The translations under genes and the position numbers were made by a program. This document shows, piece after piece, positions 3,610-4,036 of a stretch of 64,000 nucleotides of DNA. The stretch's first letter is position 1. Each line of letters opens with the position of its first letter. This DNA comes from Octopus sinensis (Eukaryota): positions 12,896,001-12,960,000 of the forward strand of contig NC_043023.1 in assembly GCF_006345805.1 (NCBI RefSeq), in the 5' to 3' direction. Below the pieces are notes generated by a model. The model did no database searches and had not been told where the DNA came from. It saw nothing but the letters and a program-made list of their open reading frames with translations.

Positions 3610-4036
3610 CATCATCATCATTTAGCGTCCGCTTTCCATGCCAGCATGGGTTGGACAGTTCAACTGGGGTCTGGGAAGCCAGAAGGCTGCACCTAGCCCA
3701 GTCTGATCTAGCAATTTTTCTACGGCTGGATGCCCTTCCTAACGCCAACCACTCCGTGAGTGTAGTGAGTGCTTTTTACGTGCCACCATTACAGGTGCCA
3801 GGCGAGACTGGCAAGGGCTACGATCGGATGGTGCTTTTTACATGCCACCAGCACTGGTATCACAGCTGCAATTTCCATTGATGTTGGTTGATTTCGATTT
3901 TGATTCTGATTCTCAATTGCCTCAACAAGTCTTCACAAGTAGAGTTTTGTGTCCCAAGAAGGAAAGGTATGCATAAGTGGACTGGCTACATCCCAGGTAG
4001 AGGCCATTGGTTATGGTCTCACTTGTCCTGCCGGGT
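3610..4036 (-). mobile_element. RTE LINE 3' tail in ZNF1 3' region
   Basis: Matches 47015-47727 from the end of the RT ORF to the (ATG)n tail. Confidence 0.9.

Follow-up and report, generated by a model that had tools for sequence, protein, structure and literature searches.

Organization of the Zinc-Finger Units

The window analyzed here is a stretch of 64,000 nucleotides from the genome of Octopus sinensis (positions 12,896,001 to 12,960,000 of contig NC_043023.1), with a G+C content of 38% and zero N. It contains nine zinc-finger (ZNF) units on the minus strand, in each of which the stop codon is followed by a 26-nt spacer and then by a sense-oriented piece of an RTE-like LINE. BLAST searches with the 3′-end of this LINE and with a longer query identified ten minus-strand copies of the LINE segment 47015-47727. 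The units are named after the class of their downstream flank (A or B) and their order, namely A1, B2, B3, A4, B5, A6, A7, B8, B9, and A10. The last of these is visible only as 63601-64000, and the end of the window hides its 5′ boundary and stop codon. The LINE-derived tails are as follows.

3610..4036, minus strand: A1 tail, 427 bp, a 5′-truncated RTE-like LINE 3′-end with its 5′ boundary at 4036 and (ATG)4 at 3610-3621
6282..6788, minus strand: B2 tail, 507 bp, 5′ boundary at 6788
18182..18727, minus strand: B3 tail, 546 bp, 5′ boundary at 18727
24552..25037, minus strand: A4 tail, 486 bp, 5′ boundary at 25037
28969..29396, minus strand: B5 tail, 428 bp, 5′ boundary at 29396
36241..36724, minus strand: A6 tail, 484 bp, 5′ boundary at 36724
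43818..44287, minus strand: A7 tail, 470 bp, 5′ boundary at 44287
50577..51063, minus strand: B8 tail, 487 bp, 5′ boundary at 51063
56671..57226, minus strand: B9 tail, 556 bp, 5′ boundary at 57226
63601..64000, minus strand: A10 tail (A class), incomplete at the window end

All nine complete loci read ...IHTQV, stop, the spacer TCGTATCAATATCAAAATTTATTACA (26 nt), and then ACCCGGCAGGACAAGTGAG; the junction of the ZNF gene and the tail is composed of IHTQV-stop, the 26-nt spacer, and ACCCGGCAGGAC. The codon at the stop position after IHTQV is TAA in seven of the nine complete units, TAT in A1, and AAA in B2. The match to the LINE starts at position 47015 in nine of the nine complete copies, and a BLAST query extended upstream into the reverse transcriptase (RT) gene adds nothing to it. 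At the corresponding point the LINE reads ACC CGG CAA GAC TAG, which represents the last four RT codons and the stop; the start of the tail is therefore placed four codons ahead of the RT stop. The possibility that the tail is a SINE was ruled out, given this start within the RT ORF and the lack of a small-RNA head. The nine complete tails range from 427 to 556 bp, according to how many copies of a 63-bp tandem repeat from the LINE 3′ UTR they carry, and end in (ATG)3-4. Both gene and tail are located on the minus strand, and the tail is therefore in the sense orientation. The original prediction placed such a tail behind the TQV* stop at all ten loci, which holds for the nine complete copies with their common boundary, 26-nt spacer, length of 427-556 bp, and (ATG)n end, the tenth being cut by the window end; its further statement that every ZNF gene ends in this way applies only to one paralogous family within one window.

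Among the nine units, only B5 retains the full ancestral ORF (29423-31147, minus strand, 574 aa, ending IHTQV*). Seven of the nine are degenerate, disabled by in-frame stops, frameshifts, deletions of the 5′ part, or insertion of a LINE, and members of one class have some of these lesions in common. The degenerate exons are located at the following positions.

4063-5900, minus strand: degenerate ZNF exon
18754-20212, minus strand: degenerate ZNF exon
25064-25400, minus strand: degenerate ZNF exon
36751-38476, minus strand: degenerate ZNF exon
51090-52230, minus strand: degenerate ZNF exon
57253-58224, minus strand: degenerate ZNF exon
47728-47785 (ATG at 47785) and 44314-45270, minus strand: parts of the A7 ZNF exon, split by an antisense LINE at ~45270-47727

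A frameshift giving “...EKTISL*” is common to A1, A4, and A6, an in-frame stop (“IHTA*KPY”) is common to B8 and B9, and B3 carries a 17-nt deletion. The 5′ parts of three units were lost by deletion, with junctions near 5892-5917 in A1, at 25391/25392 in A4, and at 52221-52283 in B8; the A4 exon is reduced to ~300 bp, and the 5′-truncated B8 exon contains in-frame stops as well. In B2 (6719-6817, minus strand), the ancestral stop TAA has changed to AAA, and 37 further codons, read through the spacer and into the LINE-derived tail, extend the ORF.

The ZNF proteins appear to be bare finger arrays starting with MNNSTKAK..., and a KRAB-like domain was not detected in the proteins of the window. 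The exact B5, A6, and B3 proteins have no record in the gene-position collection, and a search for octopus orthologues with the full B5 protein retrieved vertebrate ZNFs and no cephalopod match among the matches listed. The spacer/tail junction gave 0 matches in metagenome contigs. The region upstream of the B5 gene (31148-33203; equivalents at 7868-9025, 38474-40600, 47786-48511, and 58222-59843) is the best conserved part of the unit, with ~96% identity even between the classes. It contains an internal direct duplication of ~400 bp (31194-31591 vs. 31592-31996, 76% identity), and a candidate splice acceptor, ttctgttttag, precedes the ATG by 130 nt. This region may hold a promoter or a 5′ UTR, or it may have been homogenized by gene conversion.

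The Reference LINE and Its Relatives

The copy of the element that serves as the reference LINE has the following parts.

45300..47727, plus strand: reference LINE, 5′-truncated, with the RT frame split into ORFs 45303-46154 and 46136-47029
47030-47727, plus strand: 3′ UTR of the reference LINE, ~700 nt, with 63-bp tandem repeats at 47297-47554 and a (GAT)n end

An RT domain (Pfam RVT_1, E = 1.8e-24) was identified on 45303-46154. The closest named relative of this RT is an Octopus vulgaris protein with 82% identity over half of the query, and an O. vulgaris locus (L002) contains a copy of the same LINE with 85% identity over 2.1 kb. Both the window LINE and the L002 copy are 5′-truncated and lack the endonuclease part. 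Full-length relatives, P0253 (1042 aa) and P0254 (1031 aa), are 55-56% identical in the RT and carry Exo_endo_phos followed by RVT_1 on one protein; a PHD-like finger is also present in P0254. A (GAT)n/(ATG)n microsatellite terminates the window LINE, other pieces in the window, and the O. vulgaris copies. The combination of an AP-endonuclease and an RT on one protein of ~1030-1040 aa in the relatives with the (GAT)n/(ATG)n terminus is the basis for the assignment of the element, whose features fit an RTE-type LINE. The C-terminal motif of the LINE, RLRWYGHV...GRGRPRKTW, resembles BovB/RTE. A 3′ UTR of ~700 nt with 63-bp repeats is long for an RTE element.

Over their 5′ 200 nt, the tails of the ZNF units are nearer to the O. 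vulgaris LINE copy (17% distance) than to the window LINE (22-23%), and they share an 11-nt stretch with the O. vulgaris copy that is missing from the window LINE. The reference LINE itself is inserted in the antisense orientation into the first zinc finger of A7, between ...CACTGTGAT and ATCTGTGG, and a clear target-site duplication is not visible at this insertion point. Another copy of the family, young and 5′-truncated, is found at 48513-49147 on the minus strand, 730 nt upstream of the start codon of A7. Its ORF part matches 46875-47026 at 96% identity, whereas its tail reaches only ~84% and lacks positions ~13-184 of the LINE 3′ UTR. Tails thus vary greatly even among close relatives of the LINE. 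Judging from the 96% ORF identity, a near relative of the LINE was active recently.

Pieces of the RTE tail are abundant. Matches to it account for 12% of the window and for 2-9% of four O. vulgaris loci, which were fetched for other reasons and are used here as a background sample. In both the window and the O. vulgaris loci, these pieces are 5′-truncated at many different points, and 5′-truncated, dead-on-arrival copies are typical of this RTE-like element. A TE fragment is present in more than 35% of assembled octopus transcripts (PMC9115989). Given this frequency and the abundance of RTE pieces, a single RTE fragment near the 3′-end of a single gene is unremarkable. A protein search with the antisense ORF spanning the B tail and flank retrieved only five weak O. 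vulgaris “hypothetical proteins,” three of which (P0121, P0122, and P0123) lie on generic RTE tails beside non-ZNF genes.

Several other repeats accompany the units. Two RTE-tail copies on the minus strand, 26792-27524 and 53608-54046, have a ~62-bp repeat block expanded to many units; both lie on the downstream side of B-class flanks and run in the direction of the genes. At ~110 nt past the B-class tails (28760-28860, minus strand, and the equivalents in B2, B3, and B9), beyond the ATTAAA/AATAAA motifs, another repeat starts with GTCATTTGACTGCGGCCATGCTGGAGCACCGCC...; it has matches in an O. vulgaris locus (L001) and looks like one of the abundant octopus SINEs. The A-class flanks contain long (CTT)n/(CTC)n-type microsatellites at least ~250 nt past the tail (3300-3345, 24250-24330, 35930-36010, and 43270-43580, minus strand), the plus strand of which gives rise to long artefactual K/E-rich ORFs.

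A Probable Single Insertion Inherited by Tandem Duplication

The units are head-to-tail tandem duplicates at the DNA level, ~6-7.5 kb each. Self-BLAST identified collinear blocks of 1-4 kb with 88-97% identity, in the same order and orientation, that span the upstream region, the ZNF exon, the tail, and the downstream flank, and the tail boundaries are spaced 2.8-11.9 kb apart, mostly 6.2-7.6 kb. The units have at least 2 kb of sequence before the ATG in common at ~96% identity. For the 600 nt directly preceding the ATG, each pair in which they are present shows ~96% identity, with the exception of B3, where a deletion lies just upstream of the start codon. Downstream of the tail, identity of 92-98% within a class extends over at least 1 kb in the A units and over at least 0.36-1.2 kb in the B units other than B8. 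Since upstream and downstream DNA is shared on a kilobase scale, the units are not retrocopies. The three 5′-truncated units, A1, A4, and B8, were considered separately as candidate retrocopies and rejected: their downstream flanks are class-like (over at least 1 kb in A1 and A4, and over ~55 nt in B8 before it diverges), and their upstream junctions join known segments of the unit, indicating deletion.

The 5′ half of the tail has a single origin. Over its first 200 nt, the A and B tails share 20 sites against two LINE copies, and the distance between A and B is 8.7%, compared with 17-23% to the same two LINE copies. Together with the shared boundary, these values give good support to one insertion before the expansion of the cluster, and the expectation that a single capture predated the cluster is borne out for this half of the tail, with one boundary in the nine complete copies. 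It follows that ten copies with one boundary are the product of duplication rather than of ten events, and that the only event that would call for statistical surprise is a single insertion; every paralogue carries the fragment because the host gene was tandemly duplicated after it had been inserted.

The best explanation, to which we assign a probability of about 0.8, is that of one old LINE insertion inherited through tandem duplication, with the tail as a passenger. A 5′-truncated RTE-like LINE would have been inserted once, in the sense orientation, 26 nt past the stop of an ancestral ZNF gene, and would have retained only the last four RT codons and ~0.5-0.7 kb of 3′ UTR ending in (ATG)n. 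The gene was then multiplied by tandem segmental duplication, each unit carrying the upstream region, the ZNF exon, the tail, and the flank. Unequal crossing-over, gene conversion, deletions, and further TE insertions may subsequently have reshaped the units into the two flank classes and the mostly degenerate copies. The tail would be neutral passenger DNA, probably located in the 3′ UTR of the copies that are transcribed.

Position and Divergence of the Tail

No AATAAA or ATTAAA motif is present between the stop and the end of the tail in any copy. The first hexamers are located past the tail end, at 72 and 89 nt in most B units, at 115 and 128 nt in B8, and at 207 and 228 nt in the A units.

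28879..28901, minus strand: B-class hexamers, ATTAAA at 72 nt and AATAAA at 89 nt past the tail end; equivalents at 6209/6192, 18109/18092, and 56598/56581
3376..3402, minus strand: A-class hexamers, two AATAAA at 207 and 228 nt past the tail end; equivalents at 24344/24323, 36033/36012, and 43610/43589

The AATAAA motifs that had been expected downstream of the tail are therefore present, including the minus-strand sites at 3402 and 3381. From the position of these hexamers, the tail is probably part of the 3′ UTR in any copy that is still transcribed.

The tail shows no more conservation than its surroundings. The divergence within a class is 7.0% in the 5′ part of the tail and 5.3% in its 3′ part; the corresponding values are 5.1% for the A flank, 7.3% for the B flank, and 3.8% for the upstream region, and the same picture is obtained when CpG transitions are left out. 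A sliding profile of 100 nt gives 85-97% identity in the tail beside 94-99% in the flanks, without a conserved island; the most diverged part of the unit in this profile is the finger array (75-88% identity). A substitution rate lower than that of the adjoining sequence was not found in the tail, which diverges as fast as the flanks or faster; decay of the tail at the neutral rate had been named in advance as an outcome that would speak against a function, and decay at the flank rate or faster is what is observed. Conservation was judged among recent paralogues (4-14% divergence) in segments of 200 bp, and the young age of these paralogues limits the power of the comparison to selection that is not weak. 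On this scale the tail looks like ordinary, apparently neutral passenger DNA with no sign of a function.

A Break of Homology at the End of the Tail

A single insertion followed by duplication accounts for the 5′ half of the tail; however, the A and B units cannot be aligned directly after (ATG)n. Local alignment of the A and B flanks is no better than that of shuffled sequences (z about 0), and sensitive BLAST found no collinear A/B match within at least the first 550 nt of the flanks. A test of whether the two flanks are diverged homologues was not significant; a weak similarity may exist in the first ~75 nt (anchored global alignment over the first 80 nt, p about 0.09). The divergence between A and B climbs along the unit, from 4% in the upstream region to 8.6% in the 5′ part of the tail and 13.7% in its 3′ part. 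In the last 150 nt, the A-B distance is 16.8%, as opposed to 7-10% from A to the closer unrelated RTE copies of the window and of O. vulgaris, and a clade of A and B is recovered in none of 200 bootstrap replicates. Changes private to B are nearly absent from the 5′ part of the tail and dense from the tandem-repeat block onward, such that the two halves of the tail show opposite asymmetries in their class-private changes, with the change-point in the tandem-repeat block.

On the simplest reading, this pattern points to a boundary within the tail that was left by recombination or gene conversion. The loss of A/B homology at (ATG)n and the failure of the last 150 nt to group mean that a recombination or conversion step must be added to the single-insertion history, and in one class the distal tail, together with its flank, may have been replaced through exchange with a different RTE tail. 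It is tempting to speculate that the RTE tail, its 63-bp repeats, or its (ATG)n end served as a substrate for recombination or conversion and thereby shaped the cluster. The unalignable flanks, the rise in divergence from 4% to 13.7%, the ungrouped terminal 150 nt, and the flip in private changes are in favor of such exchanges. On the other hand, the 3′ part of the tail is CpG-rich and CpG transitions make up many of the B-private changes, a duplication soon after the insertion would likewise give a star-like tree, the segments compared are short (150-200 nt), and no donor RTE copy with an A-type or B-type flank was found in the window. Decay of CpG sites and the star-like tree of a young family are thus alternative contributors to the A/B pattern, and we regard the recombination-substrate model as possible but tentative, at somewhat less than even odds. 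It is compatible with the passenger explanation, to which it adds a mechanism.

Possible Use of the Tail by the RTE Machinery

The original prediction went further and proposed that the tail is a functional module of the 3′ UTR: the RTE RT could retro-copy the ZNF mRNAs, or the tail could be a target of LINE-directed piRNA/siRNA or of ADAR editing, and ZNF dosage would be coupled to LINE activity. Stringent-type LINEs, including RTE, can mobilize RNAs that share their 3′ tails (PMC3747384), and a sense tail in a 3′ UTR is consequently a conceivable substrate. The absence of a poly(A) hexamer before the end of the sense-oriented tail is in agreement with this proposal, as is the recent activity of a near relative of the LINE indicated by the copy at 48513-49147. 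In addition, the last 150 nt of the A tails are 89-91% identical to the LINE and close to the family consensus of two species. By contrast, the B tails are 84-86% identical to the LINE over the same 150 nt and are so heavily mutated in the final 25 nt that much of this terminus has been lost. A consensus fold of the last 150 nt in 19 copies contains compensatory changes in only two of 34 predicted pairs; with almost no covariation, no recognition structure can be claimed from this fold, which speaks neither for nor against one.

An inverted repeat of ~170 nt is formed by the A7 tail (43817-43984, minus strand) and the tail of the inserted LINE (47551-47717, plus strand), which are 90-92% complementary and 3.6 kb apart. 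A read-through A7 transcript could form long double-stranded RNA from this pair, a point in favor of the proposal.

If the tail were used in either manner, the consequences would be considerable. Retro-copying would give rise to new ZNF loci with an (ATG)n end elsewhere in the genome and might explain why the homology of the units ends at (ATG)n, and in the small RNA or editing variant the output of this ZNF subfamily would track RTE activity. However, the hallmarks of retrocopies, namely new flanks on both sides and target-site duplications, are found in none of the units in the window, and all ten copies are tandem DNA duplicates. A lack of processed copies anywhere in the genome had likewise been named beforehand as an outcome against the proposal; as far as the window is concerned, no unit is a processed copy, since all share upstream and downstream DNA on a kilobase scale. 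Moreover, the tail is conserved no better than its flanks, seven of the nine units are degenerate, and TE fragments are pervasive in octopus transcripts (PMC9115989). The sequence therefore gives no support to the substrate or sensor idea, and a functional module of this kind is very unlikely; that the RTE machinery occasionally retro-copies ZNF transcripts, or that RTE-directed small RNAs or editing act on these mRNAs, is scarcely probable. The remaining explanation, an independent site-specific insertion of an RTE element behind each ZNF gene, has in its favor only the great abundance of RTE-tail pieces and is of negligible probability: the 20 derived sites common to the 5′ halves of the tails in effect refute it, and it is also contradicted by a boundary identical within 1-2 nt and the same 26-nt spacer in all copies, the shared flanking duplication blocks, and the many different truncation points of other RTE pieces.

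Comparison with Known Systems and Implications

The shared RTE tail, best explained as one inherited insertion, is a fresh example of a familiar kind, namely a 5′-truncated insertion passed on by tandem duplication. As in other 5′-truncated non-LTR insertions in the 3′ UTRs and flanks of genes, only the 3′-end of the element and its terminal microsatellite are kept, and the fragment lies past the stop codon and before the poly(A) hexamers; such fragments are very common in octopus transcripts (PMC9115989). It differs in that one fragment is found behind ten paralogues by virtue of the tandem duplication of the gene. Expansions of C2H2 zinc-finger genes have been described in cephalopods (PMC12513265), and the present cluster resembles these and the birth-and-death clusters of mammalian KRAB-ZNF genes in its head-to-tail paralogues, in finger arrays that are more diverged than the non-coding DNA, in its many pseudogenized copies, and in TE insertions within and between units. 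By contrast, the proteins of the window are apparently bare finger arrays, in which no KRAB-like domain was detected. No published account of a LINE tail common to the genes of such a ZNF cluster was found in the literature searched.

Two further comparisons concern the tail itself. Stringent-type LINEs reportedly mobilize SINEs with the same 3′ tail (Malik & Eickbush 1998; Ohshima & Okada 2005). The likeness of the ZNF tails to the SINE partners in pairs such as RTE/Bov-tA and UnaL2/UnaSINE is that they contain the 3′-terminal 150 nt that constitute the minimal unit of many short RTE pieces in the window and in O. vulgaris. However, dispersed 5′-truncated copies with target-site duplications are not seen here, where a single array shares its flanking DNA, and in a ZNF mRNA the tail would not be terminal, as ~90-250 nt and the poly(A) would follow it. 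With respect to Alu- or LINE-mediated non-allelic homologous recombination in gene clusters, the likeness is that the A/B homology break falls where a very abundant repeat ends; the difference is that no donor copy or reciprocal product was identified here and that the mechanism is a deduction from the pattern.

These comparisons, drawn from one genomic window of the species, have a practical consequence for annotation: a cluster-wide “3′ UTR motif” of this octopus ZNF family is one old LINE fragment carried along by tandem duplication, and the presence of the LINE tail is not evidence of a regulatory circuit between LINE and ZNF genes. If the coupling idea were true, it would provide a mechanistic link between the expansion of cephalopod ZNF genes and RTE activity. 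The single feature worth pursuing is the recombination boundary at the 3′-end of the tail, where the break of homology hints that very abundant RTE tails help to rearrange ZNF clusters. As it stands, the LINE fragment is a clean marker for the history of duplication, conversion, and deletion in one cephalopod C2H2 cluster.
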